A stretch of DNA of 64,000 bases. Source: Bugula neritina. Lineage: Eukaryota > Animalia > Bryozoa. The notes below the pieces were generated by a model. It ran no database searches, was not told where the DNA came from, and saw only the letters and a program-made list of their open reading frames with translations. The translations under genes and the position numbers were made by a program. This document shows, one piece after another, positions 3,365 through 63,154 of this stretch; the first letter of the stretch is position 1; each line of letters starts with the position of its first letter. The stretch covers positions 29,016,440-29,080,439 of the forward strand of contig OZ037766.1 of the NCBI GenBank assembly GCA_964035545.1. The letters are read 5' to 3'.

Positions 3365-6300
3365 TTATTTAGAACAAACAACACAAGTTAGCTGCTTCTT
3401 ATCATCATATGGTGGACATTGTCCAGTAGCTCCATTTCCAGAGCAAACAGTTCTGACAAAGTAGAACAGAGCTCCATTTGCATTACCACCCATTCCATTG
3501 ACATACTCAAGATCTTGATCTACACACTCATATGTAGTTGGGTGAGGATGATCATAACGTTGACTCATCAAGTAACCTGAAATGACATGCAAACAAGTTT
3601 CAAATTTACTGTAAATACTAGATTTAATAGAAGTAGATGTTTATAAGAAGTGTTTTGCATTGTTTAATAACCATTATCAGCTTCCCAATATAAAAATTAT
3701 ATTTGGCAACTAGCAATTAATGCAGTATGTATAGTAATAAATTAGACAAAGCAAACTATCAAAAACTAATGCTTTGAAACTATAACTTCTACAAGCATGC
3801 GACTTCATGTTTTTCAATATAACAGGTTGTGATTAATTGCTTAATTGATATTAATGATTTAAGGGCTTTTAGACAATACTTTTTTGGTGAATAAAAAATA
3901 ATACAATATATAAAATAATACTATTAAATTAGGTGAAATTATTACATATACATAGCACTATGCCTATCTTTCAAATTTAGCCATAGGAACCTTAAGAATA
4001 AAAAATAAACATAATAACACTAAGTTATAGATATATGGATCATTACTAATTTCTGGAAATAGGGCATTTGTTGAGATATAAACAATATAATTACCTTCAT
4101 ACTCCTGTGTCTACCCAGATGGACAGGATCTTTTAGCTGGAATCATCATAAGAGCTGGTCTGTTCTCTGTATAACATCTGGCACATGGTACATTCTGTTG
4201 AACAGCTGTATTGGGGAATATTCCATAGTGTTCTGTTTGGTATTCTGCACCATTTATGGAAGAGCCTTTAAAACTGCCACCAGTGTAGGCTTTGTTGTAT
4301 TGTGGGTCAAAGGGCATACACTGGTAGTTAACTCCACCTCCAGTGTTTGTATAATATTCACCTCCAGCAAATCCTGAGAAAATAAAACTGTTTTATTAGT
4401 ATGTGTGTTCATGGATAAATAGTAAACATTATCTATAAAACACTAAATGATAATCTAATTAATTAAAATGAGATAAAATAGATAAACTTCTTAGCAGTAA
4501 TTTGCTGAGTAATATTGTCATAGTCTTCATATACAAATATAACCTTCTATGACGCAATAGATTAGTACTAATTATTTCACCTGCATAAAGTAGTGTTGAT
4601 TGGGAACCACAAGATTTTCTTCCCCATCTTACGTAAACAGCTCCTCCTTCATTATGTGACACATTGCCAGGAGCACCTGGAGCACCTGTTGGACCTCTCA
4701 ATCCTGTAAGTCCAGGAATACCAGGTAATCCGTCTCTCCCTATTTTTAAAACAGAGTCAAATGCTGTTATATGCTAAAATATTTGCTCATAGAATTGGCA
4801 GAACAATACTTGTATTCTAGCTGATAAGTTAAGTTTTTCTCACCATCACGGCCACTTGCACCATCATTTCCATCTCTACCATCTCTGCCATCTTTACCAG
4901 TAAAACTTCTGACTCCTAATATAGATATTGAGATTGTATGATTGCAAAAGAAAAAAATGCAGCTTCTCATTATCTTGCCATGTGTTTGCTTTGCACTTTC
5001 ATTGTGCAATTACAAGCTCATGCAATGATGTAGCATTTTACAAAATTCGTATCTTAAAAATATTTACGGCTATATAAATTTTGCTGTAAACTTTTAAACA
5101 GCCACTCATATAGTATATAATCAACGAAAGATATTGCTTGCATGCGTGTGATATTTTGCCATTAATGAGTGCATGTATAAACTTTAATATATGTAGCCTA
5201 TTATATTAGCTGCCATCTATTGCAAAGTGAGAAGCAATCATTATATTATAGTTCAAATCTAAAAAAGAATCAAGTTATATATGCAGTACTTTTGATCTAA
5301 AATGTATTTATTTTGAATTATATTGCCAATTTAAATTAAATTACAGTTGAGTTCAAGCTGTGATGGTAGAAAATTAAAATCTGAATAGCCTCAATCAAAT
5401 TCACAATTAAGATATGCACATTTTTGGTCTAATCTTTTTCATTGGTTTAAAATTATATATTGGCGTAATAAAACATAAAAGTTTGCTTTTTAATTTTGAT
5501 TCATAATGAACCTTAAAAGTCTCAATATCCGTTGTGTTCACCTAAACTGCATGTCAGCTAGTTAATTGTTTACTGTGACTAAAATTGAGTAAAATTGACT
5601 TTTTCTCCATATAGACCAGTTCCTATAATATATACTGATAATTTTAATTCAGAAATTTGTAATAAAACCTACATATAAAGCTGTTTGCCAAATCTAAATA
5701 AAATATAATATATAAATAAAACATTTTCTGTCATTTTAAGACAAGAATAATTTTATCTATAATACAAAGCCTTTAATTTAAGAATAATAACTTTTACCAT
5801 GTATATGCACATCTGGGATAAAAAGCTAACAACTTCATTTTCTTCCTCTTTTTCAAGATAATCTGCAGTTGGCAAAGTTCCATTGAGTAGCTATAAATGA
5901 GATCAAACATTTCAATAACAATTTTTATATATCCTCATGCATGGCTTTATAGATTAATCGTCTGCAAATAAACGGTCACAAAGTATGCGTGAGTATATTT
6001 TACTTTCATCTTATAGCTATCACTAGTTATGCTAGAAAGTACACTAAAATTCTTTACCAGACGTTGTATTTTAAGTTTAAAAATTGTCAGCTCTAGATTT
6101 TGTAATTAATTTACTCAAATAAACTACAGCAAGATTCACTACCATAATTTGATATAACTTTGAATATTCTGTTTGTAAATACTAAATATTAAATTATTCG
6201 AATATATAGTAACCCGAAAAGTTAAAACTTATAGGAAAAAAACTATTGGAATTGATTCAAAATTTAAACAAAGTGTTTTGTCTTCTTTATATGGCAGATG

Positions 6301-7376
6301 CTGAAAGCAGGCAGCTGTGATGTAACAGCCAATAAAAGCGCTTAGCCTAGGGCCACACTGTGCGTAAATTCTCGCATGCGAAAATTGAAACCGCAGGTAG
6401 CAAAGGTGTCCACTGTAGCGTCAGGGAGATCAGAAAACTACTTATAGCTAATAATATTTGCGTTTAACTTTACGTACTGCCCGCCTTGTTGCTATATGGC
6501 TACAAGTGTGGGATAAATGAATTTTTCATTTTTAAATTGCCCTCGCTTTCAATAAAACGCACTTGCATTCAGAATGCTGAGCGGCAAGTGCGAATGTTTT
6601 CTCAACGCATACAGTGGACACCTTTGCTACTTGTGGTTTAAATTTTCTCATGCGAAAATACGCACAGTGTGGCCCTAGGCTTAGCACAATATAGCGTAAA
6701 CTGGGAATTATGTAACAAAAGCAACAAACGTGTACATATGGTGTATACATTAATTTAATCATTAGCTTATATATGATCCAATTCAGTTAAGATTTCCAGT
6801 ACATTGGACAGAACTAAGTGAATATATTCTGTGCCATAAGGTATAACTATGATATTGTATGCTTCTTGAGAGAAAAAATTTGATTAAAATAAATCTAAAT
6901 ACAAAGTTCATAGCATAAGTGTTCACTAAATTGTAACGAAAGGATTCAGAACACAAATGCTGCAATGGCTAAAGCGAGTAAAATATGTATATAGGGTATA
7001 CGCAGAGCTGATAACGCAAGTTGAAACTTATTGCATCATTCAATTCTTGATGTTAAATTAAATATTAAACCACACTTTGTTTATCGGGTGTATAATAATA
7101 TGTTAATCCACTTACAACATGCAAATGCGCTGTGCGTTTTTGAGCAGTTATCTGCTCCTGAAGCAACTCTATCTGCTGCTGCTGCCTCTCAATTTGTAGT
7201 TGCTGACTTTCATTTTGCTGCCTAAAAACCTCTGTTAGTGCTTCTAACTTATTTTGTTGTTCTTCTAGAAACTCTGTGATATCTTCAACAGTACCACTGG
7301 GTATTCCCTCAGAAGAGTGAACTAGCAGTGTACTTAGTGTTATTAAGAGGAAAACTACAACATAATATACCAACAT
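3365..7376 (-). pseudogene. G1: short-chain collagen C4-like gene with two inactivating lesions
   Basis: Exons 7376-7116, 5890-5798, 4915-4844, 4739-4581, 4373-4095, 3576-3365, all GT-AG. Exon 2 is 93 nt versus 91 nt in every other copy (frameshift). TGG>TAG at 4113-4111 in the conserved CPxGW motif. Confidence 0.85.
6345..6680. mobile_element. MITE in G1 intron 1, PIF/Harbinger-like
   Basis: About 70-bp terminal inverted repeats (gcctagggccacactgtgcg...cgcacagtgtggccctaggc), TTA on both sides, absent from the paralogous introns. Confidence 0.85.
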
Positions 7377-8110: not shown

Positions 8111-8274
8111 TATTTCAGATGAGCTATTAAATAATTTTTATTTTAATAAGTAATTTGATTGCTGTATAAAATATTGACATTAATCTCTTCACAAAAGCTG
8201 CGAATATATTAAAAATTTGTAACTCTCTTATTACACTTTACACACAAACACACACATACACACGAATATACAAC

Positions 8275-9467: not shown

Positions 9468-12013
9468 TTACTTGGAACAAATAACACAAGTGAGCTGCTT
9501 CTTGTCATCATACGGTGGACAGTGTCCAGTAGTCCCCTCTCCAGAGCAATCAGTTCTGACAAAGAAAAACAGAGCTCCATTTGTGTTGGCACTCAATCCA
9601 TTGATATACTCAGGATCTTGATCTACACACTCATATGTAGTTGGGTGAGCATGATCATAACGCTGAGTCATCAAGTAACCTGAAATGATATATGCAAACA
9701 AGATTCAAATGTTACTATCACTACGGCACTACGATTTAGTGAATAGATATCTAATCATTGGGCAAGTTTTTTTCATAGCAAAGATCACTTGATATATGCA
9801 CATGATAATATATATAAAATGGATGCGATCTGTTTGAAGTGGACCATAAAAAAACCATGCAATATTATAATACTAACATCAACATTGAGTTATAGGTATA
9901 TGGATCATTGTGAGCTTAGAAAAATGATGCTTCCAATATATAAACAATATAATTACCTTCATACTCCTTAGTCCACCCAGTTGGGCAAGATCTTCTTGCT
10001 GGAATCATCATAAGAGCTGGTCTGTTCTCTGTATAACATCTGGCACATGGTACATTCTGTTCATAAGCTAAATTGGGCAATATTCCATAACTAAAAGATT
10101 GATATTCTCCACCATTTATCGAAGAACCCTCGAAACTACTACCAGTGTATGCTCTGTTATATTGTGGGTTCAGGGGCATGCACTGGTAGTTAACTCCACC
10201 TCCAGTGTTTCTATGAAATTCTCCACCAGCAAATCCTGAGAAAATAAAACTGTGTTCACAAATAAATAGCATTCATTGTCTATATAAACCACTAAATGGT
10301 AATTTGATTAATTAAAGTGACATAAATGATTAAATTTTTAGCAGCAATTGCTGATTAATATTATCATGACATTTTCCATATACAAGGAAACATTCAGTGA
10401 TACATAATAAATGTAATCTATTTCACCTTCATAAAGTAAAGCTGATTGGGAACCACAAGATTTTCTTCCCCATCTTACATAAACCGCACCTCCTTCAACA
10501 TGTGACACATTGCCAGGAGCACCTGGAGCACCTGTTGGACCCCTCAATCCTGTAAGTCCAGGACTACCGGGTAATCCATCTCTCCCTATTTATAAAACAG
10601 AACTGAAATCAATTGCTCATTGAATGGACACAGAACACTTATATTCTAATATAAGCGTTTAGTTATAATTTTTAATTTTCTCTCACCATCACGGCCATTT
10701 GCACCATCTTTACCATCATCTCCATCATCTCCATTTCTGCCATCTCTACCATCTCTGCCATCTCTACCATCTTTACCAGCAACACCTCTAATTCCTAATA
10801 CACATTAAGACTATGATTACGAAGATAAGAATATATTGCCTTTTGTTATCTTATAATTCCAATATGTTTGCTGTGCACTTTTATCCTGCAATTGCAAGCT
10901 CCTGCATGTAAACTAAATGCTCCAGCTCATACATGTAAACTACATGCAGTTTGTTACTTGCTTAATATACATTTTCTATATATAAACTGTAATTGACGTT
11001 CTAATCTTTGTCACGACACCTAAAACTAAAAACTACTTGCCACATCCAAATGAAAATATAAATGAAGCCTTTTTTGTCTGTATATAACAATTTAAAAACA
11101 CTACATCATAATTCAAATGAAAAGCTACTAATTTCAAAACAATAATTTTCACCATGGGTGTAAAGCTGGCCTAAAACGCTACTGATTCCTTTTTCTCCGT
11201 CATTTGCAAGAGATTCTGCAGTTGGCAACGCTCCATTAAGTAGCTTTAAACAAAATTAAAATTCACAGAAATATCTTTTATCTACATGCATGTGTACATT
11301 TTCAGGGTGTGGCTGCGTTAATTACTTTCGTCTTAGTTATCACAAGCACTGCAAAAATAAACCTAATTAACTGCTTTAAAATACTATGTGTTTTGAAGTT
11401 AGACAGTTTTAGTTTTAGATACAGAAATTTACTAAAAAAACGTCTGCCAGATTCACCAGCAAATTTGTTCAAAAATAAACAGAATGTTTACCGTTTGACT
11501 CATTGAATGTCTGAATTAATTTCTACAAGCATACAGCTGTGAGGTAACAGCTGATGATAGCGTATAGTACAATACTAGCTACGAGTGCTTGCTTTTATCT
11601 TTGGTGTGAACTGAGCATAATGTGGCATCAACAAATATATCTTTATATTATTAGGTGGAGAACAAATCTTTTTGTAGCTGTTGAAAATTTGACATAATTA
11701 CATCCAAATAGCCTATTGTTTCAGTGATTATTTAACTATTCTCTCCCGCGCACACGCACAATGGTGATCCACTTACAACATTCAGTAGTGAAAGTGTTGT
11801 GAGTTGTTGAGCATTTATCTGCTCCTGAAGCAACGTTATTTGTTGTTGCTGACTTTCATTTTGCTGCCTAAAACCCTCTGTTAGTGCTTCCAACTTATTT
11901 TGTTGTTCCTCTAGAAACTCTGTAATATCTTCAACAGTACCACTGAGTGTCCCCTCAGAAGAGTGTACTAGCAGTGCGCTTAGGAGAAAAACTACAACAT
12001 AATATACCAACAT
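9468..12013 (-). CDS. G2: secreted short-chain collagen C4-like protein (361 aa; 21 Gly-X-Y triplets)
   Basis: Exons 12013-11777, 11243-11153, 10794-10687, 10585-10427, 10235-9957, 9679-9468; 1086 nt in frame; GT-AG introns with phases 0,1,1,1,1; hydrophobic N-terminus and complete NC1 motifs. Confidence 0.9.
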
Positions 12014-13020: not shown

Positions 13021-13639
13021 ACTTTAATAAATGCACAATTGTTGTACATGGAATATTGACATTAATGTCTCACAAAAGCCTTGAATCTATTAAAAAGTTG
13101 CAACTCCCTGACTAAATTTGATATATCTATATACAAAGTGACCATAACTCCTTAAGTAGGCTCTACATATTTATACAAGGTGACCATAACTCCTAAACTG
13201 CAATCTATATATCTATACAAGGTGACCATAAATCATAAATGCCTTGCTATTTCACCATAACTTCCTGTCTAAATAATACATATGGATTAAATAGTGGTAT
13301 AACAACTTACAGCATTGAGACTGTTTTGTAGACACTGAATTTTGTTTAATATTCAAATTTCCAAGAATAACAAGTTAACCTATATATTAATTACCGCTGT
13401 AACTAGTCAATCTTATTTCTATATACACGGGCCCAAACAGTCATGGGGACTTATAGAATAAACTGTATAACTTAATAAAACTGTTTTTGAAGATTTTACA
13501 GATTATAAATAATTTAATTGCTAGTTTGTCAATAATTAGCTTAAAGGAAAAGCGTTTACTCTTATCTTTTTACAGTTGCGTTTCAAAGTGATATTATGTC
13601 AAAACTTTGAAAATACTAATACAAATATTACAAATACGA

Positions 13640-15265
<1,626 letters not shown>

Positions 15266-15367
15266 ATTTACATATAAAACTTGTTTCTTAAGAACTGTCG
15301 GAAGTGCTTTGATAGATTTTTGGAGTTTTCCTTTGATTTCATATTATTTAGCCTTTGAGTGATATAT

Positions 15368-20760: not shown

Positions 20761-22124
20761 GTGTTTGATAGTCTTCTGTCAAATTAACTTGATATTCTGG
20801 TATAGAAACAAGCTTGAGGATGATTCCCCTGAGGTCAACAAAGTGCATTGTAGAAACCACAGCATCATTCCAGATAGAAGCTTCCCAGTTATACATGCAA
20901 AGCCTCTCACTCAGAGCTATTTATTTAGCTTTGTATAACATATTATGTATTCTGTGTGGAGTTTGGTTTTTGGGAAGCGTCTAACTAGGAAGCAATTATC
21001 TGGGATGAAACCGACATCACTTCTATACAATATTATAGTAGAAAAACTTTATTATATGTTTATTGGTAAAGGCTAGATTATTGTCTCCACTCGTTCTGAG
21101 TATTTGGATTTATATAAGGGAGTTTTGTTAATCTATTTTTTTCTGTAAATTGAATTTGTTTTTATCGTTTAAATATACAATCAGTCTATATGTTTGTAAT
21201 AATACAAAATTGTTATTACCAAGAGAGTAGTAAATGATGACATTGTTCATGTATATATAGTTATATGTTTAGAAGATATAGACAAGCTGTGCAAAAACTA
21301 CAATTAGTACATATAAACCAGACAAACCTTTTTCAACAGTCTTCATCTTTGTGTCATTCCCTGTGACTGTCTGAGAGTCTCTGACGTTTGTCAAAAATAT
21401 GTATAATATATATTCTATAGTGAAACTGACACAAAGATCTGATTGGCTGGTCTGTCTAAAATACAGCAACAAATTAAATAGCAGAAAAAAATTGGAACGT
21501 CATTACTCCAGTTGCATAAATTAGCCAATGAAAGATAACTTTAATAAATGCACAATTGTTGTAGATTGAATATTGACATTATTGTCTCACAAAAGCCTTG
21601 AATCTATTAAAAAGTTGTAACTCCCTGCAACTAAGCCTTATGTATATACAATGTGACCATAACTCCCCGACTACACTCTATATATCTACAATGTGACCAT
21701 AACTCCACATATTTATAGCAAGTGCCCATAAATCATAAATTATTTGCTATTTCACCATAACTTCCTGTCTAAATAATACATATTGATTGAATAGTCATCA
21801 GTTAGTATAACAGCCTTAAGACTGTTTTGTAGGCACTGAATTTTGTTTTATATTTAACTTTCCAAAAATAACAAGTTAACCTATAATAATCACCACTGTA
21901 ATTAGTAACTTATATTTCTATACACGCAGAGCACAAACAGTCATGGGGACTTATAAAATAAACTGTATATTTTAAAACTATTTTTGAAGATTTCACAGAT
22001 TATAAATAATTTGAATTGCTAGTTTGTCATTAATTAGCATGCTTTTTTTTTATTTTTGCGTTGCGTTTCAAGGTGATATTATGTCAAAGGTTTGAAAATA
22101 CTAATACAAATTTTACAAATATGA

Positions 22125-22860
<736 letters not shown>

Positions 22861-24267
22861 ACCATTTACATATAAAACTTGTTTCTTAAAAACTGTCGGA
22901 AGTGCTGTGATGGATTTTGGAGTTTTCCTTTGATTTCATATTATTTAGCCTTAGAGTGATATATTACTTATCTTTTTTGGTCTCTTTTCTTTTTGTGCAC
23001 TGTAAACCAAAGTTCACTTGAAGATCGGTAGAATATTCTGGAAGTCAGAGGAGCATCTGATTTCCAGAGTGTATAAGGAGGCGAACTCACAGTGTAGTCA
23101 GTCTACAGCTGGAGCTCATCAGAGAAAGACCCACTACAGATATTTCTACCTTCAATAAAGATTCTCATATACCTTACAGGACACTCTCTGCTTCTTTATT
23201 AAATGCAAGGAGTTATGATCTCCACTTAATTATTTCCAAACCCACCAAATTACTACAGTGTGCTTGAAAATTTCCTAAACGGTTTTTAACATTTAAACTT
23301 TTAATCAAATTATGCAATAAAATCGTAAAACATACATCCAGGTAATTTTATTCAACTGCATGTATCTTTCTAAATATTACATTTGCGTATTACATAATAA
23401 CTGTGTAGAACATATGCATCTATGTGTATTTATATTAGACTGTATATTGAGGTATTCAGTTGAAGAAGGAAGTTCCTAGTTTAGATCAGCTCATAGAATA
23501 CCTAATAATCATCAGTATGTAGTCACATTCAGTGTTATCTGATTCAATCATCAGTTCTGAGTACAAGTTTATTATCAGAATAATAGAAATATTTTATTTT
23601 TTTCACATAAACTTTTGAACATTGATTTCAGGTATGCTTTTCTTTTATGTTCTTTCTCATGTAATTAATTTCTTTGTTGGTAAGAATTACCAGAATTTAA
23701 TTTATAACAATAATATTAGCTATGAGTTTTGAAAAGCCTCTGTAATTTCACATAACCATTGTACTGTCGTAAGTTTACAATCGGTTGGTGCTGAGTAAGT
23801 GAAATCTAAAATGTTGAATTTCCAATGAAATTAATAGTGGAATAGGCTGTGTTCTTTGTCTAAAATCTAAACAACCACTATTTTAACTTTGAACCGTCAA
23901 GCTATTTGAGAAAAGCTAAAAATTCAAGAGCTCTTTAGTAGTTATATGATTTGTATGCCTGGGCCTATAACCGTGTAAATTAATAAGAAGAAACTAAAAT
24001 GTATAAGTAGTTCATTTCAATAATTTTTCGATTTTTGCTACTTTTATTTGTGGTACTAATTTAATAAAATCTTCACTCTTACATAAATAGAATTCTAGAA
24101 AATAGTTTGCAATATGATTATATGATTGGTTTAGCCACTCAAGAATTTGGCCAATAAAATGATGTGCTTACATAACAATATACGTTAGATGAGAAAAAAC
24201 AGTTGTAGCATAATACACTTATCTAGTTTTAAAAAAAGATTTTTTACTTTTGTCATCACAAAGCTGT

Positions 24268-30426
<6,159 letters not shown>

Positions 30427-32564: not shown

Positions 32565-33620
32565 TTATTTAGAAAAAACCACACAAGTTAACTGTTTCTT
32601 GTCATAATATGGTGGACAGTGTCCAGTAGTTCCATACCCAGAGCAATCAGTTCTGACAAAGAAAAACAGAGCTCCATTTGTGTCATCACTCAGTCCTGTT
32701 ATGTACTCAGGGTATTCATCTACACACTCATATGTCGCTGGTTTATAATTATGTCTCGAACTCATATAAGGTATCCTGAAAACACAAGCATATAAAACAT
32801 TTAAAGGAATTGTAGGCATGGGCTGTTTCTGTGTGCTTAAAGCTGTCAATAATGAAACTATAGTAGTTGATATTATGTAGTATAATCACACCATGGTCTA
32901 TACTACCATCTCTTATACATACATTTCTAATTATCAGTACCTTCATATTCCTTTGTCCACCTAGTAGGACAAAATCTCTCAGCTGGAATCATCATAAGAG
33001 CTGGTCTGTTCTCTGTATAACATCTGGCACATTGTACATTCTGGTCATATGAGCTGTATTAGGGAATATTCCATAATGTCTTAGAGATTGATATTTTGCT
33101 CTGCCCATCAAAGAGCCAGAAAAATCATCACCAGTGTCAACTCTGTTGTATTGTGGGTCAGGGGGCATACACTAGTAGTTCACTCCACCTCCAGTGTGGT
33201 TATAGTATGATCCTCCAGCAAAGCCTGTATGTTTACAAGCGTAAAAACATAACGTGCTTGTTAAAAACAACAATGTGCACTAGTGTGTGGGTGTGTGAGT
33301 GTGTGAGTGTGTGAGTGTGCGAGTGTGCGAGTGTGCGAGTGTGCGAGTGTGCGAGTGTGCGAGTGTGCGAGTGTGCGAGTGTGCGAGTGTGCGAGTGTGC
33401 GAGTGTGCGAGTGTGCGAGTGTGCGTGTGAGCGTGTGAGCGTGTGAGCGTGTGAGCGTGTGTGTATGTGTGTATGTGTGTGTGTGTGTGTGTGAGTGTGT
33501 GAGTGTGTGAGTGTGTGAGTGTGTGTGTGTTAACACCCAACCTTTAATTAATAAAGTTGATTCTGCAATGCAGCATATAGTTCTTCCCCATCTTGTACAA
33601 ACAGCACCTTCTTCAACTTC
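32565..33620 (-). pseudogene. G5: decayed NC1-only remnant (last three exons)
   Basis: Exon 5 has CAG>TAG at 33174-33172 and a +2 frameshift. Exon 6 has a +2 frameshift after GYL and ends CVVFSK. The exon 4 remnant reads EEGAVCTRWGRTIC. I recognise no collagen, linker or signal exon upstream. Confidence 0.88.
33283..33530. repeat. (GAGTGTGC)n and related octamer repeats inside the G5 intron
   Basis: Directly visible. Confidence 0.95.
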
Positions 33621-36853: not shown

Positions 36854-36957
36854 TTATTTAGAACAAACTACACAAATAAGTTGTCTCTTATCATCATATG
36901 GTTGACAGTGTCCAGTAGTTCCATGTACAACTAGCTCTGATGAAATAGAACAAAGCT
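36854..36957 (-). pseudogene. Orphan fragment of the terminal exon (ALFYFIRASC/GTTGHCQPYDDKRQLICVVCSK*)
   Basis: Homologous to exon 6 with an internal deletion, followed by a G4/G8-type 3' flank (about 36100-36850). Confidence 0.8.
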
Positions 36958-43140: not shown

Positions 43141-44529
43141 TTGCATTCAACCGTTTTTCGGGGGACGTGCTGGTGCGCGGAGGGGTCAGCGGATTGGTGC
43201 AAGAATTTCATGGTCTGTGACTGATCTTATTTTGTTTTGTTTGTTTTGATTTACATAATTTATCAATATTTGTCAGAATAGTATCCGCCAAACAATTCGA
43301 CCCCACCGATGTATTGGTATGCCACCCAGATGTATTGGCAGGCCGCCAATCATTAAAGCTTTCAGGCTTTAAAGCTTTCACCAAAGCTATTATTAGCTGG
43401 CAGGGCTAGTGCTATAATTCACTGTACTGCATGAGTCAGTGTGTCATGATCAAACCGTCAGAGAGGAGCATTTTTAGCATTATACGATTAACACACAGTT
43501 AGACTCCAATATTTACACTCTTTGTGAGAATAGACTATCGGTTTTGGCATTGTGATGGCTAAGAAGTTTATCTATGCATCAATATTGCAAGTTTTATTAG
43601 AATTATAATAGATCATATCAATTTGTTTGGTTCTGTAATGTTCATGGTGTTTCTCTGACTTTTGATTTATATTGTTACTACTTACTTATACAATTTCTAT
43701 TTTTTCCCATTTTTCTAGGGTACGGTTTGAGAGTAAATAAACTTGAAAACCTGTTGCCAAGTTGGCTAGTAGTTAAAGTAAATCATTCAACCAGACACTA
43801 ACACAAAACCGATACAGTTATATTATATCATTGTCCAACGAAAATATTAAATAAATTTAAATTTTATTAAAAATGAATTTCTATATATTAAATTATGTAT
43901 TAAAATGTATTTTCCTAGATTTATTACTTATAATAAATTTTCACTTAATAATTGATGGGTTGGAATTGATCAAGGACGACAATTAACAATTTAGATATTA
44001 CTTGATATAATTTTGCTTTAAAAGTTAGTGTATGCAATCCAGCAACTGTAGAATAAAAATAGGAGTTATCTCCGCTCGACAAATGTTTATTTATGGTTTG
44101 GTTTGGCAATATTACTCATGTATAAACAATATATGTGATTCTATGTGTATTGTGCAACGGTTAGCACTCAGGTTAATATTCTGTGTGACAAATTTGGGAT
44201 TTGCTCCCCCAAAGAATTGAAATTATAAGATATATATTATATGTTTTGTATAATATGTATATCTATATTTGATGATAATATCAAAGCAAGCAAAATTACA
44301 ATAACAAAATATTACAAGAAATTAACCAAACCAAAAAAAAGATTATCCTAGCGATCCTTTGAAATCTTGCTGTGTTTACATTATACTAGCAAACATAAAT
44401 TAATAAGTCTGACAAGCAAGATAGACAAATTATCCAGATTAGATTCACAAAAGAATTGCAGTTAAAACATCAATATTTAAAATACTTCCTTCAACATATA
44501 TTTCAACAAATTTCAACAAATATTTCACA

Positions 44530-45267
44530 ATGCGTTCTACTAGATCAACTAAGTCTACCTCAGAAGATGAGGTGACTCTAAAAACACTGGACAACAAACT
44601 AGATCTGGTTTTGAGTGAATTCTCCAGTATCAAATCAAGGCTGACAGCTATTGAGAATACTCAAAAAGAATTCGAAAAGTCCCTGGAATTCGTACATCAA
44701 GAAACTAGGAAAAATGACTACAATATCTCAAGGATTGAAAATTCTGTCAAACACGTTGAACAAAAACTGGAGGAGTACAAGTCTCTTGATGAGAGAATAG
44801 AGACATCTGAACACCATGAGAGAGCAAAGTGCGTCGAGTTAAATGGTATTGAATACAACAAAGATGAAGACCTAATGACTGGTTTTGATAGAATCATCAA
44901 AAATCTAAAAATGACCTCAATATCAACTACACAAGACATTGATAAAATCTATAGAATTCGACAAACCAAGCGCATCGTGGTTAAGTTTGTTCACACCAAT
45001 AAAAGAGATACATTCTTCCACACTTATCGTAAAAGTATTATGTCAACAAAACAATTAGGTTTTCAAACAGATTCCAAAATATTTATTAACGAGGTTCTCA
45101 GTAGTAAGCAAAGGGACCTTTTTTGGAAAACCAGAAACTTCAAAAAATCAAACAACTATAAGTATGTTTGGACATTTGCCCAACGAATTTACTTGCGCAG
45201 AACACCTGACTCGGAGGCTATCCAAATAAATGATGTAAATGATCTCGAGAACCTGAAATGTGTTTAG
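44530..45267 (+). CDS. LINE ORF1 (coiled coil plus RRM/CTD-like region, FP-protein-C-like tail)
   Basis: 245 aa. N-terminal heptads, VELNGI, RIVVKF, IFINEVLS..QRDLFWKTR....NYKYVW....IYLR; directly upstream of ORF2. Confidence 0.85.
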   Translation: MRSTRSTKSTSEDEVTLKTLDNKLDLVLSEFSSIKSRLTAIENTQKEFEKSLEFVHQETRKNDYNISRIENSVKHVEQKLEEYKSLDERIETSEHHERAKCVELNGIEYNKDEDLMTGFDRIIKNLKMTSISTTQDIDKIYRIRQTKRIVVKFVHTNKRDTFFHTYRKSIMSTKQLGFQTDSKIFINEVLSSKQRDLFWKTRNFKKSNNYKYVWTFAQRIYLRRTPDSEAIQINDVNDLENLKCV

Positions 45268-45317
45268 TGTACCTCACTTTTGTATTTAACTTAAACTGCT
45301 AAGTTATCTTTTGCAAA

Positions 45318-48188
45318 ATGCATGAAATTAACTGCACAGCATACGACATCTTTTCTTTTAACAAACTAGAAGTAAATAATTCAACTTTCTCTCTTCTTAA
45401 CTTTAATATTCAAAGCATTAGAAATAAATTTTCACATTTTGAATATTTTTTGAACACTTTTTCTAACCCCTTTGATGTAATTTGTTTAACTGAAACTTGG
45501 CTAAATGATGATGAAATTCAATTTTTTAAACTTGAAGGTTATGATTTTGTAGGTAGTCAGAGACTGGGTAGAGGAGGTGGTGTTGGGGCCTATGTGCGGT
45601 GTGGCCTGGGGGCCGACACGAAGGCTGTTTCGCTGTCTGGAGCAGACGTCCTCTCACTTGTTCTACACAGTCAGGCCTCAAAGTCTTCCCATTTCAGACT
45701 CACAATTATATACAGGCAGCCCGGTGCTTCCTCCACTGATGCGTTTCTTAGTGACCTGGAGGCTTATATTTCCCATGATTCTTCTCCCCATATTGTAGTA
45801 GGTGACATCAATATAGATACCCTTGACATGAATGTAAGTGACACTTATTCCACCACTATTTCTACCTATGCCTTTTACAATGCTATCACTCTCCCAACTA
45901 GAATCTCATCGTCACGAGCTAGCTGTTTAGATCATATCCTTCTAAACTTCTCTTGCATAAACGGTAAATCTGGAACCATTGAGTCAGATTTGAGTGACCA
46001 CCTACCCACTTTTGTGACGTTTCAACTGAATTGTTCAAATAGAACTAATATTGTCTCAGATGATATGTATAGAACTATTAATTATTCCAAACTAGTTTCC
46101 AAGATAAACTCATTTTGCTGGTTGAAGCTCTTTGATGACTCACAAAATTGTGAAGTAAACTATGATATATTTATTACTAGACTAAAATTTCTCATTGAAA
46201 GTTGTTCACAGACTATTGAAAACAATAGGCCTTCTAAAAAGTTTGCACAAAAACCATGGATTACTGAACATCTTTTAACTCAAATCAAAAAGAAATATGC
46301 ACTTCACAAACGAGTGAAAAAAGCACCCCTGAATAAAAAGATTTTAAAAAGATATAATGCTTTTAGAAATAATTTGAATGCTGATCTGAGAACCGCTAAA
46401 TATGATTATTTTAAAGCTTTTATTAGCAATTGTAACAGTTCGCAGCTTTGGGTACTTATAAATGAACAAACAGGGAAAGCCAAACTAAACAAAAGATGCT
46501 TTTCATCAAAACTGTATTCGGTTGAGGACTCTGAAACCATGCTAGATAGCAATATGGATATAGCTAACAATTTCAATCTGTATTTTTCAACAATAGCCCA
46601 AAAACTAGCTTCAAATTTTACAAATTCGAACTCCGATACCTACTCAATGCTGACAAATATTACTAAAGAAGAATTTCATTTAAAAAAAACTGATGAATCT
46701 CAAATAATTGAGATCATTGAAAAACTAGATTCCAAGAAAGCTATAGGTTTAGACAATATCCCGACTAAACTTATCAAATTTTGCAAAATTTCACTATCTA
46801 CACCACTTGCCTATTTATTTAACAAAAGCATAGAAGAAAAAATTGTTCCAGCGCAAATTAAAACTGCTAAAATATTACCATTCTACAAAAAAGGTTCTCA
46901 TGACAGATGTGAAAACTACCGCCCTATTTCAATCCTCCCCATTTTTAGTAAAATACTTGAAAAAATTGTTAACAATCAAATTTTAAACTTTTTAGAATCT
47001 AAAAATTTGATTTCTAAGAATCAATATGGCTTTCGAAAAAATTTAAGTACTGCAGATGCTGTTGTTAAATTTAAAAATAATACGCTCGAAGCTTTTAACA
47101 ATGGAAATTGCGTTCTCGGAATTTTTATAGATTTTAGTAAGGCTTTTGACACTATAAATCACAATATTTTACTTGCAAAAATGAGAAAACTTGGTTTTAG
47201 TGAATCCACAGTGTCATGGGTTGCTAACTACCTATCAAACCGAAGTCATTCCACACTAGTAAATGCAACCTTATCAAGTTCACGATCAGTGACCTGTGGG
47301 GTTCCCCAGGGATCTGTCTTGGGCCCTACCTTATTTTTGATATATATAAACGATCTTGCTCAACAATTTAAACTTTTTAATCCCATTTTCTATGCCGACG
47401 ACACTAATTTATTTTTTGAATCAAAAGATTTGAACTCCCATTTGGAAGCTATAAATCAAGATCTAAACTCTCTGTCAATTTGGTGCAATAAAAACAAACT
47501 CACTATAAACTATGAAAAATGCAACTATATTGTTTTAAAAAACTACCAAAATCCTTTTCAAATTCTAGAAAACTGTATATTATTAAATAAAAGACCTATA
47601 AATTACTCTAACAGCATAACTTTTCTAGGTGTACAAATAGATAAAAATTTAAATTGGAGCTTGCACATCTCAAACCTACTTACAAAATTACGACCACTTA
47701 GTGGATTAATATACCGATGTTCTGAATATCTCCCTCAAAAAATTTTACTTTTGATATATAATTCTTTCATCAATTCCAAGTTAAATTATTGTGCAGAGGC
47801 CTGGGGAAATGCAGCTAATACCCATCTAAACAAGATTTTTATTTTTCAAAAAAAGGTAATGCGTATCATGAACAAAAAACCGTTTGACCATCCATCAGCG
47901 CCTCTATTTACTAAGCATAAAGTTCTCTCAATATACCAGATTTACCGTTTTAAAGTGTTAAAGAAAGCTCATTCTTTTTTCTACTCTGACAATTTTTTTC
48001 CCACTCACTCTATCAATACACGTCAATCATTCATAAATCTCCCCCTTCCTCACTCTCAAACAGCAGCAGGTCACAGAAGAAACTGTTATCAGGAGGTGGC
48101 ACTATGGAATGAACTGCCAATCCCTTTACGGTCAATTAGCAACCCTAATGAATTTGGGAGGAAGTTGAGGCTTTATCTGTTAGAATAG
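45318..48188 (+). CDS. LINE ORF2: AP endonuclease plus reverse transcriptase
   Basis: 956 aa. APE motifs NIQS, LTETWL, GGGV, IYR, GDINID, PTR, LDHI, SDH. RT motifs YRPISIL, QYGFR, DFSKAFD, GVPQGSVLGP, YADDT, FLGV. Confidence 0.95.
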   Translation: MHEINCTAYDIFSFNKLEVNNSTFSLLNFNIQSIRNKFSHFEYFLNTFSNPFDVICLTETWLNDDEIQFFKLEGYDFVGSQRLGRGGGVGAYVRCGLGADTKAVSLSGADVLSLVLHSQASKSSHFRLTIIYRQPGASSTDAFLSDLEAYISHDSSPHIVVGDINIDTLDMNVSDTYSTTISTYAFYNAITLPTRISSSRASCLDHILLNFSCINGKSGTIESDLSDHLPTFVTFQLNCSNRTNIVSDDMYRTINYSKLVSKINSFCWLKLFDDSQNCEVNYDIFITRLKFLIESCSQTIENNRPSKKFAQKPWITEHLLTQIKKKYALHKRVKKAPLNKKILKRYNAFRNNLNADLRTAKYDYFKAFISNCNSSQLWVLINEQTGKAKLNKRCFSSKLYSVEDSETMLDSNMDIANNFNLYFSTIAQKLASNFTNSNSDTYSMLTNITKEEFHLKKTDESQIIEIIEKLDSKKAIGLDNIPTKLIKFCKISLSTPLAYLFNKSIEEKIVPAQIKTAKILPFYKKGSHDRCENYRPISILPIFSKILEKIVNNQILNFLESKNLISKNQYGFRKNLSTADAVVKFKNNTLEAFNNGNCVLGIFIDFSKAFDTINHNILLAKMRKLGFSESTVSWVANYLSNRSHSTLVNATLSSSRSVTCGVPQGSVLGPTLFLIYINDLAQQFKLFNPIFYADDTNLFFESKDLNSHLEAINQDLNSLSIWCNKNKLTINYEKCNYIVLKNYQNPFQILENCILLNKRPINYSNSITFLGVQIDKNLNWSLHISNLLTKLRPLSGLIYRCSEYLPQKILLLIYNSFINSKLNYCAEAWGNAANTHLNKIFIFQKKVMRIMNKKPFDHPSAPLFTKHKVLSIYQIYRFKVLKKAHSFFYSDNFFPTHSINTRQSFINLPLPHSQTAAGHRRNCYQEVALWNELPIPLRSISNPNEFGRKLRLYLLE

Positions 48189-53349: not shown

Positions 53350-55109
53350 TTATTTAGAACAAACAACACAAGTGAGCTGTTTCATGTCATCATATGGTGG
53401 ACAGTGTCCAATAGTTCCATCTCCAGAGCAATCAGTCCTGACAAAGAAAAACAGAGCTCCATTTGTATTACCACTCATCCCATTGATATACTCAGGGTCT
53501 TCATCTACACACTCATATGTAGTTGGGTGAGGATGATCGTAACGTTGACTCATCAAGTAACCTGAAATGATGTGCAAACAAGATTCAAATGTTACTATAC
53601 CACTACGATTTAGTGAAAGTAAATCTCGATCTACAGATTGGTCAAGATTTCTCCATATATAGCAACGATCAATTTATACATGCATGGTATTATAAAGTGA
53701 ATGCTATCTGTTTGAAGTGGACTATATAGGAACTGCATATGCAATATTCAGAACTAACATCAACATTGAGTAGGTATATATGGATCATTGCAAGCTTAGA
53801 AAAGTGATGCTTTTAATATATGAATAATATGATAACCTTCATACTCCTGTGTCCAACCAGATGGACAAGATCTTCTTGCTGGAATCATCATCAGAGCTGG
53901 TCTATTCTCTGTATAACATCTGGCACATGGTACATTCTGTTGCACAGCTGAATTGCGGAAAATTCCATAGTGGTTTGTTTGATATTCTCCACCATTTATC
54001 GAAGAACCCTCGAAACTACTACCAGTGTATACTTTGTTAAACTGTGGGTTCAGGGGCATGCACTGGTAGTTCACTCCACCTCCAGTGTTTGTATAAAATG
54101 CTCCACCAGCAAATCCTGAGAAAATAAAACTGTGTTCACAAATAAATAGCATCCATTGTCTATATAAACCACTAAATGGTGATCTGAGTAATATAAGTGA
54201 CATAAATAAATGCATTTTTAGCAGCAATTGCTGAATAATATTATCATAATATTTTCCATATACAAGGAAACATTCAGTGATACATCATATTAGCAATCTA
54301 ATTCACCTTCATAAAGTAGAGCTGATTGGGAACCACAAGATTTTCTTCCCCATCTTACATAAACCGCACCTCCTTCAATATGTGACACATTTCCAGGAGC
54401 ACCTGGGGCACCTGTTGGACCCCTCAATCCTGTAAGTCCAGGACTACCAGACAATCCATCTCTTCCTATTTATAAAACAGAACTGAAATCAATTGCTCAT
54501 TGAATCGACACAGAACACTTATATTCTGATCTGAGTGTTTAGTTATAATTCTTAAGTTTCTCGCACCATCACGGCCATCTGCACCATCTTTACCATCATC
54601 TCCATCTTCTCCATTTCTGCCATCTCTACCATCTCTACCATCTTTACCAGCAACACTTCTAATTCCTAATATACACATTAAGACTATATGATTACGAAGA
54701 TAAGAATATATTGCCTTTTGTTATCTTATAATTCCAATATGTTTGCTGTGCACTTTTATCCTGCAATTGCAAGCTCCTGCATGTGAACTAAATGCTCCGG
54801 CTCATACATGTAAATTACACGCAATGTCTTACTTGTTTAATATACATTTTCTATATAAACTGTAATTGACATTCTAATCTTTGTCATGACACCTAAAAAC
54901 TATTTGCCAGATTTAAATAAAAATATAACTAAAGACTTTTTGTCTGTATATAAAAATTTAAGAGCACTACATCATAATTCAAATGAAAAGCTTTTAATTT
55001 CAAAACAATAACTTTTACCATGGGTGTAAAGCTGGCCTAAAACGCTACCGATTCCTTTTTCTCCGTCATTTGCAAGAGATTCTGCAGTTGGCAACGCTCC
55101 ATTAAGTAG
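53350..55109 (-). pseudogene. G7: G2-like copy with open exons 2-6 but exon 1 (ATG, signal peptide, coiled coil) deleted
   Basis: Exons 55109-55019, 54665-54567, 54465-54307, 54115-53837, 53561-53350 are in frame. At about 55300 the sequence jumps from the G2 equivalent of about 11435 to about 12729. Confidence 0.8.
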
Positions 55110-56207: not shown

Positions 56208-56694
<487 letters not shown>

Positions 56695-56777
56695 TGTGCC
56701 TGAGGAGTGCCGAAGAGGCATGAAACTATTAATAGTGCAATAAAACAACATCTATATAATTAAATTGCTCTTTTCCT

Positions 56778-56836
<59 letters not shown>

Positions 56837-58030: not shown

Positions 58031-61000
58031 TTATTTAGAACAAACAACACAAGTTAGCTGTTTCTTGTCATAATATGGTGGACAGTGTCCAGTAGCTCCA
58101 TCTCCAGAGCAATCAGTTCTGACGAAGTAGAACAGAGCTCCATTTGCGTCACCATTCATCCCAGGGACATATTCAGGATATTGATCTACACACTCGTATG
58201 TAGTTGGATGAGAATGGGTATAGTGTTCTGTCATGAGGTAACCTGAAAAATATTTTATAGCGGAGTTTTAAAACTCACTATAATTTCTACTGATAGTAGT
58301 AAGAGCTGGCCTTTACATTTTCTGGAAGAATTCATACTTATATTTGGTCTAATTTTTATATGAAAGCACTACTTCCGCAAGCATGATAATGCATGAGGTT
58401 TGAGATCAAAATTTTTTATTTATTCACTACATATCATATTATCAAACCAGTTATGTAATACCTGATAAATTCATAACCTACTGAATAAATGAGATGATAT
58501 TTATGATTTTTGTTAATGGCTCAACAACAAATTTTATTGCTTTTCAGTGCTGATTCATCGCCATCAATGCAGCACAATGCTATAGTTGTTAATTAATATG
58601 ATAGTTTATTTTTAATGAGAGGTTTTACTTCAACATAAAAGTAGTCTTTCACATGAATCAATTGTGTAATTTGCGCAGTTCAAACAATTACTTATGAAGA
58701 ATTCCTCAGGATATGGATCATTATTCCGAAGGCCCATTGCTTCGAAAGTTCATTAGTCCAAAAATATTTGCCTAGTACACACTAACTGAGGCAAGTTGTT
58801 ATTCAAGTTACACCATAATATATTATTACAATAGAAGTAGAATATAGCTTTTGGAATCATTGATACTATTGCACAGCTCTTTTAAAATTAGGCTCTTATA
58901 CTATATGCATGAATGGGAATATATAAATCAAGCTTTTTGTGCCATCATAATTGCATGCATTATATAGACTGAGCTTCTATAATGTAATTTAGAATTTAGG
59001 CTGAATATTTAATGCCAAGTTATATAATTTATGTTGGTGGACGGCAATGCAAATAGTGAAAAGATCAAAAATAAAAATAAAGCACTAGCAAATAATTGTT
59101 CAAGTAAAAAGTTTCGTTTATACCTCTGCTGAAAAAAGTACCGATTTTAAGTTAATAATGCTTGTCCGGGTACCCCTTTATAGTCAAACTGAAACTCGTT
59201 GAAATCATATTATTGATGCGGTTGCTCACTTTCTGAAATTGAAATTTGACTCGGATAATAGCTATTTGATGCCCTTTGTAAACGTTGTGAATTAGTGAAG
59301 CGGAAAGCATAAAAGCGATAATTGAGAAGGCGTAGGCTATATAATTATAACCGTACTAGTACGTTGTCTAATCGCCAAAGTAATAACTAAATAACGATGT
59401 TTACAAGGAGTTATTACTCCTATTCTAAAATTGGCTGATTAAGTTATCACAGTACAAAAATTTCAACGAGTGGCTTTTACAATGCAATGCAACTCGGAGA
59501 AATTTCAACCCGGCCAAATTGAATTTTTGACCGAAAATCGTGAAGGTATAAACGCAACTAAAACATTACTTTGCTTTTTTGACCAATTACAATTCAACAC
59601 CTCCGGGCCTACAAAACAAAGCCAATAACAGTTTTATTTTATTAAGCAACCAGATTTGGAGCGATGGGCCTTTGGAATATTGACTAGTCACTTATTTCCT
59701 CAAAACCACGGACTTACAAACTATGACATTGCATGGTAATTTGCACTGAACTTAAAATTTCTAATAAGCTGAATGGTAGTGGTGAATAATATTTGAAATA
59801 AATAAGAGCATTGAGTATAGGTAATTTAATTACTGCAAACTTACATGAGCAATAATAATTTATTTACCTTCATACTCTTTAGTCCACCCAGACGGACAAA
59901 ATCTTTTAGCTGGAATCATCATCAGAGCTGGTCTGTTCTCTGTATAACATCTGGCACATGGTACATTCTGATTATGAGTTGTACTGGAAAATATTCCATA
60001 ACTATAAGATTGATATTCTGTGCCACAAATTGAAGAGCCCTCAGAAATGCCACTAGTGTAAGCTTTGTTATACTGTGGGTTCAGGGGCATGCACTGGTAG
60101 TTAACTCCACCTCCTGTGCCTTTATAATATACTCCACCAGCAAATCCTGAGAAAATAAAACTGTTTCTATAATATGTTTGTACAAATAATTAGTAAAAAT
60201 TACTTAATCAGTTCAACACCCAAGAAGTTTCACATTGTGTGCAATAAGTTGCTTAGAAGTGAGTCTCAATTCGTGTTGCCATATGTTTAAAAAATCAAAC
60301 CTTCACCCCCTGTTCACACATTGCCGTATTGTACGCCGTAATGTAAAATATTAGTAATCTTTAATGTGTCAGGGCTGAAGTTTACAAAGTCTGCTATTAG
60401 GTAACATATAAGACTTTTCATTTGCCAATTTTATCCAATGAGCTGACGCGAAAGTTTTTCTATCCAATAGGAATTCGCCGCAACTAGTTTGAATCAAGCA
60501 GTGCTTGATCCATCTCGTAGCACTGTACAAGAACCTCAGACATTTGTAAAAATTGCTGATATTTTACGTTACGGCGTACGATACGGTGATGTGTGAACAC
60601 ATAATAATAGCAATCTAATTCACCTGCATAAAGTAAAGCTGATTGAGAACCACAAGATTTTCTTCCCCATCTTACGTAAACAGCACCTCCTTCAACATGT
60701 GCAACATTGCCAGGAGCACCCTTCACTCCTTTCATGCCAGAAACACCTTTTACTCCTTTGAGACCAGCTGCACCTGTAGCACCTTTTGCTCCAGGATTTC
60801 CATTTTTCCCAGGTATTCCAGAAACTCCTTGAGCTCCATTAACACCAGGTAAGCCAGAAATACCAGGTGATCCTGAATCTCCTTTAGCTCCTTTAGACCC
60901 AGGAGCCCCTGTTGGACCTGTAAGTCCAGGACTACCGGGTAGCCCATCTCTCCCTATTTATTAAACAGAAACGAAAACAATTATATGCCAAAACATTTAC

Positions 61001-63154
61001 TTATAAAATTGGCAGAAAAAACATTTGCATCCTGATACAACTTTTAGTTGCATGGTATATAAGTCAAGTTTATCTCACCATCACGACCATTTGCACCATC
61101 TTTACCATCTTTACCATCATCTCCATTTTTACCATATTCTCCATCTCTACCATCTCTACCATCTCTACCATCTTTACCATCTTTACCATCTTTACCAGCA
61201 ACACCTCTAACTCCTGACACACATTTAAAATAATATATGATCACAAAAGTAAGAATATAGCCTTCTAATGTCCTACAATGGATTAATGCAGGGATGTCCA
61301 ACCTTTTTGGAGTGAGGGCTACTACAATGAAACCCTTCTTGGCAAGGGCCACATTGTAAAATTTACCTAGAGTTAGGGGATACAGCGTCAGTATTTTTCA
61401 AATAACTTAATTCCAAATTTCTATAAGTCATTACGCAATGAAGTCCCAGTAGTTACTGCAGACTGCATGCTTTTAGCATAATATGTAAAAACAAGACATT
61501 TAAAAGGTGTCTTCGCACTGTAATTCATATATACGGTATGGAAAATAATTTTATGTGTTATGCCTTTGAGGGCACATGAAATGTAGGGGGGGGGGGCTGG
61601 ACTTGGGGCCTTCTGTTGGACAGCCCTGTGTTAATGCATAGCACTTTTATTGTGCAAATACAAGCGCCTGAAACAATATAGCATTTTACAAAAACAAGAT
61701 TTTACAGAATTAGAATGTTACAAATATCCCCAGCTGTATTATACAATCAAATAATTAACATGCAAACATATACTTTTGATATAAAAATTTTTGTTTATAA
61801 TTTCTTTCATTTTGCGTATATAATTGATGTAATAAAATATGTATAAACTTGACCTGTTAAATCTTTTAAAAATATAAACCTGAAAATATAGTTTTGTTGC
61901 TCAAACTTTAATTGGCTAATTACTTCTTGTGACTACAATTGGTTAAAAGCCACTTTTTTATATAAACCTTTCCCTATAAAAATCTCAATATTTTTCATGA
62001 AATCAATAAAGCTGCTGGTTAAACCAGAAAACATAATCAAAGTAAAACTAGCTCGTCTATAATATAAAACTTAAAAAGCCTCTAATTCAAAAGTTATAAT
62101 TTTTACCATAGATGCACAGCTGATCTAGAAAATTATCAACTTCCTTTTCTTCCTCTTTTTCAAGAGAATCTGCAGTTGGCAACTTTCCATTGAGTAACTA
62201 TAATAAATAATATTACTGGTTCAATAATTGCCTTCATCTACATTAATGGTGTTTGGGGTTGCAATTATGGTTACATCATGTATGAGTTATATCCCAGCTA
62301 TCAATAGTACACAAAATACTCCATTAAACTACTTGTAATTACAATGTATTGTAAAGCTAAATATTTTCAACTCTAGATATCAATTGACTGAGATAATTTG
62401 GCCAGAATTAATACAAAAATCTAACATAATTTTAATATTTTCTACTTGTAAATAATAAATAGAAAGCCTTGCGAAACAGCTCAGCCAATCAACACTCAGA
62501 AAACAATCAATGGAATTGGCGCAATAGTAAACAGAATGCTTTGCACTCGATATGCTGAATGCTAAGTGAGAGCCTTCTAAAACCAGACAGCTGTGACGTG
62601 ACAGTCAAGGAAAGCGTAACACATTAGCAGTGATGAGTGCTTACTTTTAGCTACAGTGTGAATGAGAATAATGTGGGGGAAAGTGCAAAAGCAGAAATAT
62701 TATGTATGTACTACTTTAATTGTTAGCAAAGACAACTCTTAAGCTAAAATAATGATTAACCCACTTTATGTATATTATATATATAATGTTATTATACACT
62801 TACAACATGCAGTAGTGAAAGTGTTGTGTGTTGTTGGGAAGTTATCTGCTCCTGTTGTCTTTCTACCAGCAGCTGCAGCTCTCCTATCTGCAGCTGTTGT
62901 CCATCATTCTGCTGTTGCTGCTCTTTATTCTGAAGATGGTGATTCTCTACCTGCTGCTGCAGCTTCTCAATTTGTATTTGCTGACTTTCATTCTGCTGCC
63001 TAAAAGCCTCTGTTAGTGCTTCCAACTTATTTTGTTGTTCCTCCAGAAACTCTTTAATATCTTCAGCAGTACCACTGGGTATCCCCTCAGAAGAGTGAAC
63101 TAGCAGTGTACTTAGTGTTATTAAGAGGTAAACTACAACATAATATACCAACAT
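58031..63154 (-). CDS. G8: secreted short-chain collagen C4-like protein, long-collagen type (465 aa; 43 triplets)
   Basis: Exons 63154-62804, 62197-62107, 61213-61079, 60953-60624, 60146-59868, 58242-58031; 1398 nt in frame; three intronic TE insertions. Confidence 0.88.
58709..59693. mobile_element. Non-autonomous TIR element in G8 intron 5, Mutator-like
   Basis: Degenerate inverted ends (tcattattccgaaggcccattgcttcgaa / tttggagcgatgggcctttggaatattga) and a near-perfect 9-bp flanking duplication aattcctca / atttcctca. Confidence 0.6.
60311..60599. mobile_element. MITE in G8 intron 4
   Basis: About 45-bp imperfect TIRs tgttcacacattgccgtattgtacgccgtaa / ttacggcgtacgatacggtgatgtgtgaaca; absent from G4 and G6. 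Confidence 0.8.
61289..61628. mobile_element. hAT-type MITE in G8 intron 2
   Basis: TIRs cagggatgtccaac / gttggacagccctg. Flanking 8-mers gattaatg / tgttaatg. Empty site tgttaata in G6. Confidence 0.8.

Follow-up and report, generated by a model that had tools for sequence, protein, structure and literature searches.

A tandem array of spongin-type short-chain collagen genes in the bryozoan Bugula neritina, with variable head segments for which diversifying selection is not supported

We analysed a window of 64,000 nucleotides from the bryozoan Bugula neritina (contig OZ037766.1, positions 29,016,440 to 29,080,439 of the forward strand). Between positions 3365 (where the stop codon of G1 ends) and 63154 (the G8 ATG), the minus strand of the window carries eight paralogs of one six-exon gene with GT-AG introns (G1 to G8; Table 1). 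By their sequences the genes belong to the spongin short-chain collagens (SSCC), also called 'short-chain collagen C4' (Aouacheria et al. 2006, as cited in PMC5395295 and PMC12549020). An earlier reading of the same DNA, made from the sequence alone, had proposed that short segments of the globular heads form one ligand-binding face under diversifying selection. We found that selection for diversity in these segments is not supported, and nothing that we found points to immunity. The array is probably an ordinary birth-and-death, gene-converting expansion of the known spongin-type matrix family, in which the loops of the head tolerate change.

The gene models were built from conserved exon ends and GT-AG splice sites. 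They bear out the layout given by the sequence-only reading, in which secreted proteins, built of a globular head on a collagen stalk, are encoded in tandem on one strand, and the motifs, coordinates and four variable strings per copy that it quoted match our translations exactly. Five of the eight copies (G2, G3, G4, G6 and G8, 361-470 aa) are intact and three (G1, G5 and G7) are broken; these lesions had been overlooked, as had a helix encoded by exon 1 and a fifth variable stretch of the head (alignment columns 81-87). Run X1, labelled RNA-Seq, bears out the splicing modelled for G8: one contig joins 62197 to 62804, exactly intron 1 of G8, with GT..AG on the minus strand. Cover over G8 in this run is exon-biased and near zero in most non-repeat intron bins, although the RNA label is a guess, DNA is possibly present in the run, and other mapped contigs may stem from close paralogs. 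The window DNA is AT-rich and animal. About 30 copies, arranged in two opposed blocks, make up the cluster to which the array belongs (contig C2, 28.75-29.08 Mb, ~330 kb). The window covers its distal end, and over the next 20 kb downstream no copies were found. Genome-wide, the family accounts for at least 74 head exons.

We assigned the family from its relatives and from the pattern of the head. A profile of exon 5 retrieved 1777 related proteins from a representative library, among which the named relatives, from Watersipora, Amphimedon, Branchiostoma and Magallana, are called 'short-chain collagen C4-like'; the closest public proteins are those of Bugula neritina itself. The head gave full-length matches at 45-58% identity to Watersipora, Amphimedon and Branchiostoma members, with E-values down to <=1e-60. 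The spongin head has been described as having ten conserved Cys, seven common with collagen IV and three spongin-specific, and no HSQ motif (PMC5395295). In the array, the intact copies of the cluster keep ten Cys columns, which are also invariant or nearly so across 101 family heads; a conserved HSQ motif is absent. The number of Cys agrees with that given for the spongins. In sponges, members of the family belong to the skeleton, and in other invertebrates to the matrix; spongin is a skeletal material of demosponges (PMC5395295). In a sea anemone the family is expressed mostly in neuroglandular cells (PMC12549020), and two of its members are up-regulated in the adhesive pedal disc of a sea anemone (PMC6626399).

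In the intact genes, sequence and models together describe a chain composed of a signal peptide, a helix of ~50-90 residues, a short linker that in most cases contains a single Cys, a stalk of 21-43 Gly-X-Y triplets and a β-rich head of ~170 residues with ten Cys. The signal peptide and a stretch rich in Gln, Glu and Leu are encoded by exon 1, and the linker, of 30 residues, by exon 2. The collagen part begins in exon 3 with a charged G-K/R-D repeat and goes on in exon 4 with Pro-containing Gly-X-Y triplets; exon 4 then supplies the first ~26 residues of the head, and exons 5 and 6 the remainder. Two forms of exon 4 occur, a long one of 330-339 nt (G4, G6 and G8) and a short one of 159 nt (G1, G2, G3 and G7); among the intact models the stalk is 63-130 residues long. 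AlphaFold2 (AF2) modelled exon 1 of G8 (alignment A3) as a single helix of ~90 residues, with a mean predicted local distance difference test score (pLDDT) of 86.4 and values >90 over residues 41-117. Homologs of this exon are present in G1-G4 and G6. The model suggests that the helix is probably a trimerising coiled coil, whose length varies among the copies.

This architecture both resembles and departs from that of the SSCC described so far. The Bugula chains are, likewise, secreted and carry a short Gly-X-Y domain directly upstream of a C-terminal NC1-like head, but they differ in having the coiled-coil-type helix of ~50-90 residues N-terminal to the collagen. Relatives in Watersipora and Bugula also have an N-terminal helix, and in a clam, a relative without collagen likewise has an N-terminus resembling a coiled coil; we found no description of an N-terminal coiled-coil layout in the papers on the family that we examined. 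In addition, the expansion is unusually large, with arrays of up to ~30 genes. Literature searches for a bryozoan expansion of spongin collagens, or for selection studies on the family, gave nothing relevant. Such a lineage-specific expansion in a bryozoan would be useful for annotating the lophophorate matrisome and for following the evolution of NC1-like heads.

The sequence-only reading had placed the heads in a family related to both spongin and the collagen IV NC1 domain. The spongin half of that statement is upheld by the relatives and the ten Cys, and NC1 is indeed the sole structural neighbour that we found, although a weak one. As a proxy for the structure of the head we used a Bugula neritina homolog (P0160, residues 201-393; AF2 pLDDT 89.9), because the window's own full-length proteins are not present in the protein collection. 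In Foldseek, the top 39 matches to the P0160 head were all collagen IV NC1, with E-values of 2e-3 at best, probabilities <=0.87 and a template modelling (TM) score of ~0.25. VIA-align gave Z 6.1 and a root-mean-square deviation of 6.0 over 164 residues to the single-chain NC1 trimer 6mpx, and Z 2-3.5 to single chains; 6mpx was the sole PDB representative with Z>=2 among 48,161. Sequence searches were negative: the Pfam C4 family (PF01413) gave no match for the window exons, for full-length homologs or, at E<=1, for the 101 heads, and a PDB sequence search with the exon-5 profile and the 101-head profile found no chain (head profile at E<=10). A genome-wide C4 scan matched only other loci, the true collagen IV genes at C7:2.30 Mb and C2:16.09 Mb. 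As judged from the modelled fold, the link between the head and NC1 is, thus, specific but remote. The array proteins share with collagen IV NC1 (PDB 1LI1, 1M3D, 5NAX and 6MPX) a Cys-rich β head placed C-terminal to collagen. Their head is, however, ~170-190 aa long, as compared to ~230 aa in collagen IV, and their stalk 63-130 residues, as compared to ~1,400; the array stalks do not form the long interrupted triple helix with a 7S end that characterizes collagen IV.

A second likeness that had been proposed, to collectins, ficolins and C1q, survives for the layout and not for the head. Like these defence collagens and EMILIN/multimerin, the array proteins are secreted and carry a globular head C-terminal to a collagen stalk. 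Pfam searches of the exons, the homologs and the 101 heads, however, found Collagen only, and no C-type lectin, fibrinogen-like or gC1q domain. The order of parts also differs, in that collectins place a coiled-coil neck after the collagen; in the array proteins the coiled coil comes before the collagen and the head, which is the order seen in EMILINs.

Long invariant blocks of the head contrast with short variable segments in 26 copies drawn from the wider cluster as well. We collected the head exons of these copies as a codon set and used the 24 copies without stops. Under the one-ratio codon model (M0), ω, the ratio of nonsynonymous to synonymous rates (dN/dS), was 0.30 for the head overall. 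Pairwise Nei-Gojobori dN/dS of the four variable segments together was 0.70 among the 24 copies and 0.58 among the window's six intact heads, as compared to 0.27 for the rest of the head; dS in the variable segments was 0.73. When site classes were allowed, the model with a class at ω>1 (M2a) was preferred over the nearly neutral model (M1a), with a likelihood ratio test statistic (LRT) of 26.6 for the whole head and of 28.9 for exon 5 on its own tree (p=5e-7; ω 3.2 in 5.6% of codons). Addition of a gamma site-rate term improved the exon-5 likelihood by 53.6 units, and the comparison of M2a+G with M1a+G then gave an LRT of 0.03 (p=0.99), the class at ω>1 being gone. A profile scan showed no gain at any ω2>1.5. 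We, therefore, rejected M2a without rate variation as evidence of positive selection, its signal being lost under the gamma control. Fixed effects likelihood (FEL), computed on a 26x26 rate grid with the synonymous rate left free, gave 4 weak sites out of 163 at p<0.1, no more than expected by chance, and showed that the synonymous rate is high at sites 65 and 74. Significant purifying selection, in contrast, was seen at 38 of 94 exon-5 codons and 27 of 69 exon-6 codons, and exon 6 gave no signal of positive selection (M2a versus M1a, LRT 0). The claim of diversifying selection is, thus, not supported, and a dN/dS at or below 1 in the segments, which the sequence-only reading had itself named beforehand as refuting it, is what was found. 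The case is also a caution about method: in a gene family with clear gene-conversion mosaicism, an M1a/M2a comparison at p=5e-7 vanished once site-rate variation was included.

We noted that 80% of the segment residues are predicted to be non-strand (loop). The same positions are the most variable across the 101 heads from several phyla (entropy 2.44 versus 1.25 bits; rho 0.55, p 8e-16). Variable positions that vary family-wide and are mostly loops, therefore, fit low constraint. Within the array, close paralogs have loop sequences in common, and the variation tracks phylogeny. The segments had been described as rich in Tyr, Phe, His and Ser. This is correct for His (10.3% versus 1.5%) and Ser (19.9% versus 6.0%) and slightly so for Phe, but Tyr is equally high across the head.

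The copies show mosaicism. Trees of exon 5 and exon 6 disagree, and the pairwise homoplasy index (PHI) test across the head is significant (p<0.0005). Within exon 5 the PHI test is not significant (p=0.14), and shuffling of cassettes inside the exon is, therefore, not demonstrated. G2 and G7 are 92-99% identical in their 5' half, and intron 4 of G2 is 93% identical to that of G3. G4 and G8 combine an identical segment 1 with a different segment 2, and G2 and G7 show the reverse. One block of 60 nt in exon 5 stands out from the rest of the head: its synonymous heterozygosity is 0.03, as compared to 0.2-0.37 elsewhere, and its dS 0.08, as compared to 0.41, while outside it the synonymous sites of the 28 paralogs that share it differ at about 30-40%. 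A 60-mer next to it is recognisable in only nine copies. The near-invariance of the 60-nt block could reflect an anchor for gene conversion, a constraint on splicing or RNA, or codon bias. The strong heterogeneity of synonymous rates over the head could likewise stem from tracts of gene conversion, a function at the level of nucleotide sequence or mutational bias.

We propose that three chains zip together along the coiled coil at their N-termini and along the collagen helix, and that the heads register the chain ends and link the molecules into the extracellular matrix, as in the spongin of sponges and in the members of the family in other invertebrates. Tandem duplication, gene conversion or exon exchange, and pseudogenisation probably account for the growth and decay of the family. 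The variable segments would be, for the most part, surface loops in which change is tolerated (ω near 1 or below), set on a strongly constrained core of the head (ω ~0.05).

Several observations weigh against this account or speak for a diversified recognition repertoire, in which the loops of trimeric heads form one ligand-binding face for immunity, colony allorecognition, or the recognition of symbionts or of sites for larval settlement. Among invertebrates, large arrays that are specific to one lineage and code for proteins with a collagen stalk or a globular head are typical of recognition families, and the Bugula array is a large tandem family whose loops are distinct in nearly every copy and contain much His and Ser. 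M2a is strongly preferred as long as no site-rate term is included, its sites (34, 62, 65 and 74) lie within the quoted variable segments, and site 62 alone shows 11 different residues among 24 copies. In the three closest pairs of copies the segments differ by 0.20-0.26 per nt; divergence is lower in intron 4 (0.07-0.12) and similar in intron 5, the flanking introns together spanning 0.07-0.22. The pairings of segments 1 and 2 in G4/G8 and G2/G7 suggest reassortment. The profile scan leaves room for 1-3 codons at ω 2-3, and ~40% of exon-5 codons fall in the class at ω=1, a share which is high for expressed genes and could mask a mixture of positive and negative selection. Our codon-likelihood code was home-made, with branch lengths fixed up to one scale factor, and was checked only against the M0 likelihood of IQ-TREE (-5335.30), which it reproduced exactly. 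The matrix role, moreover, is drawn from membership of the family only. Nevertheless, segment dN/dS at or below 1, the loss of the ω>1 class once site rates vary, FEL at chance level, the null result for exon 6 and the PHI result within exon 5 all argue against a recognition repertoire, as do the family-wide variability of the same positions, in sponges, amphioxus and others, and the alikeness of loops in close paralogs. An immune recognition role is not assigned to the spongin family in the literature that we examined. We, thus, consider this explanation improbable; were it true, the few collagen-stalked pattern-recognition molecules would gain a new kind of head.

A bolder form of the same idea is that the array is a germline-encoded, combinatorially shuffled repertoire, in which blocks that are nearly invariant even at synonymous sites, such as the 60-nt one (NVPCARC...IPA), serve as homology anchors for gene conversion that moves loop 'cassettes' among about 30 paralogs. 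The raised synonymous and nonsynonymous divergence of the loops would then mark old exchanged cassettes rather than relaxed constraint, and bryozoan colonies would hold diversified trimeric heads for allorecognition, symbiont recognition or immunity. We regard this form as a long shot. By analogy with collagen IV NC1, the loops might instead lie at head-head or chain-chain interfaces and act as a chain-selection code that sets homo- or heterotrimer composition or end-to-end partners. The sole structural neighbour of the head is the assembly module of collagen IV, NC1 has been viewed as a recognition module directing assembly (PMC5395295), and the many co-resident paralogs, with two classes of stalk length and coiled coils that vary in length too, would need sorting. 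A co-evolving interface should, however, leave an adaptive or compensatory signal, and none survives the control for rate variation; the N-terminal coiled coil could, moreover, do the sorting instead. Such a code seems unlikely. It is also conceivable, though very doubtful, that the loops are cross-linking or adhesive, with His, Ser and Tyr as handles (for metal coordination, quinone or di-tyrosine cross-links, or phosphoserine) in cuticle hardening or adhesion. In this case composition rather than exact sequence would be selected, which would give ω near 1. The 7-fold enrichment of His and 3-fold enrichment of Ser in the segments, with Tyr making up about 9-10% of the whole head, are consistent with such a role, as are the up-regulation in the pedal disc and the skeletal use of spongin mentioned above. 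This is, however, an argument from composition only, and the propensity of such residues for loops could by itself produce the enrichment. An expansion of a matrix family with tolerant loops is, thus, the reading that we prefer.

Table 1. Gene copies of the array in the window, and parts of the G8 gene (positions are those of the window)
Feature	Position	Strand	Remarks
G1, pseudogene	3365..7376	-	TGG->TAG in exon 5 (4111-4113); 2-nt insertion just before the exon-2 donor
G2, intact, 361 aa	9468..12013	-	exon model; linker without the Cys found in most copies
G3, intact, 387 aa	17814..20760	-	exon model
G4, intact, 457 aa	24268..30426	-	exon model; intron 1 is 3.1 kb, with a reverse-transcriptase fragment
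G5, pseudogene remnant	32565..33279	-	exons 5 and 6 only; stop, frameshifts, Cys-to-Phe in the last motif
Extra exon-6 tail remnant	near 36770-36957		
G6, intact, 470 aa	37159..39874	-	exons 1 and 2 divergent; one Gly-to-Arg triple-helix break
G7, 5'-truncated	53350..55109	-	exons 2-6 open; exon 1 and promoter region deleted
G8, intact, 465 aa	58031..63154	-	in-frame GT-AG model, no stops
G8 exons	63154-62804, 62197-62107, 61213-61079, 60953-60624, 60146-59868, 58242-58031	-	GT-AG model
G8 exon 1	62804..63154	-	signal peptide helix, residues 2-21; Gln/Glu/Leu-rich helix, residues 27-116
G8 collagen stalk	60624..61213	-	exons 3 and 4; Pfam Collagen PF01391, E 6.7e-19 and 5.9e-10
G8 variable segment 1 (after FAGG)	60118..60132	-	predicted loop after a strand; dN/dS 1.11 over 5 codons
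G8 variable segment 2 (after YT)	60025..60054	-	predicted loop and strand start, lower pLDDT; dN/dS 0.64
G8 variable segment 3 (after EYQ)	60001..60009	-	predicted loop; dN/dS 0.84
G8 variable segment 4 (after GYLM, exon 6)	58211..58231	-	dN/dS 0.55; exon 6 M2a versus M1a LRT 0
Nearly invariant 60-nt block	59908..59967	-	codes NVPCARC...IPA; 95-100% identical DNA in all 28 cluster copies, the protein being nearly invariant too

Among the broken copies, G5 has a (GTGTGTGC)n array in the expected place of its collagen exons. The deletion in G7 spans ~930 bp relative to G2: homology between the two stops 194 bp into intron 1 and restarts upstream of the G2 ATG, and tblastn found no match for a G7 exon 1. 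In exon 2 of both G2 (11153-11243) and G7 (55019-55109), the linker reads QLYTH as compared to QLCIY, and is without the sole Cys between coiled coil and collagen; if the linker Cys makes an interchain disulfide, the G2 and G7 chains would not form one. The otherwise intact G6 carries, in exon 4 (38063-38401), an Arg for Gly in the triple-helix repeat (G-K-D-R-N-P-G), its single helix interruption, and its exon 1 is similar to the Bugula neritina protein P0270.

Heads of the spongin type were also seen in two very long proteins, one of EukProt origin (P0001, Choanoeca perplexa, 3949 aa) with 10 tandem heads and one from a metagenome (P0005, 3827 aa) with 6. These heads are 32% identical to the Bugula head, keep the Cys pattern, and lie beside TNFR, ephrin-receptor-like and, in P0005 only, SH2 domains; neither protein gave a collagen match. 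Spongins have been called animal-only (PMC5560861). Because P0001 and P0005 carry such heads, the spongin-type head may, by sequence, predate animals, although contamination of the sources of the two proteins is possible.

The DNA between and within the genes holds several kinds of repeat. Retroelement remains lie between genes at 41554-48185 on the plus strand, where pieces of a Pao/BEL-type peptidase and DUF5641 (41554-42993) and an open reading frame of a long interspersed nuclear element (LINE) with endonuclease and reverse transcriptase (45318-48185) can be recognised; the reverse-transcriptase fragment in intron 1 of G4 is at 28188-29486 on the minus strand. Introns 5 (59057-59569) and 4 (60311-60599) of G8 contain a very high-copy repeat, for which the summed contig depth was >50,000 in two larger runs and clearly raised in a third, and intron 4 also contains a pair of 53-nt inverted repeats. 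Long (ATATAC)n arrays occupy 13625-15276 (271 copies, between G2 and G3) and 22124-22874 (124 copies, between G3 and G4), and a 42-nt minisatellite recurs at 13130, 31308 and 55732. The (ATATAC)n arrays and the minisatellite may be substrates for unequal crossing-over.

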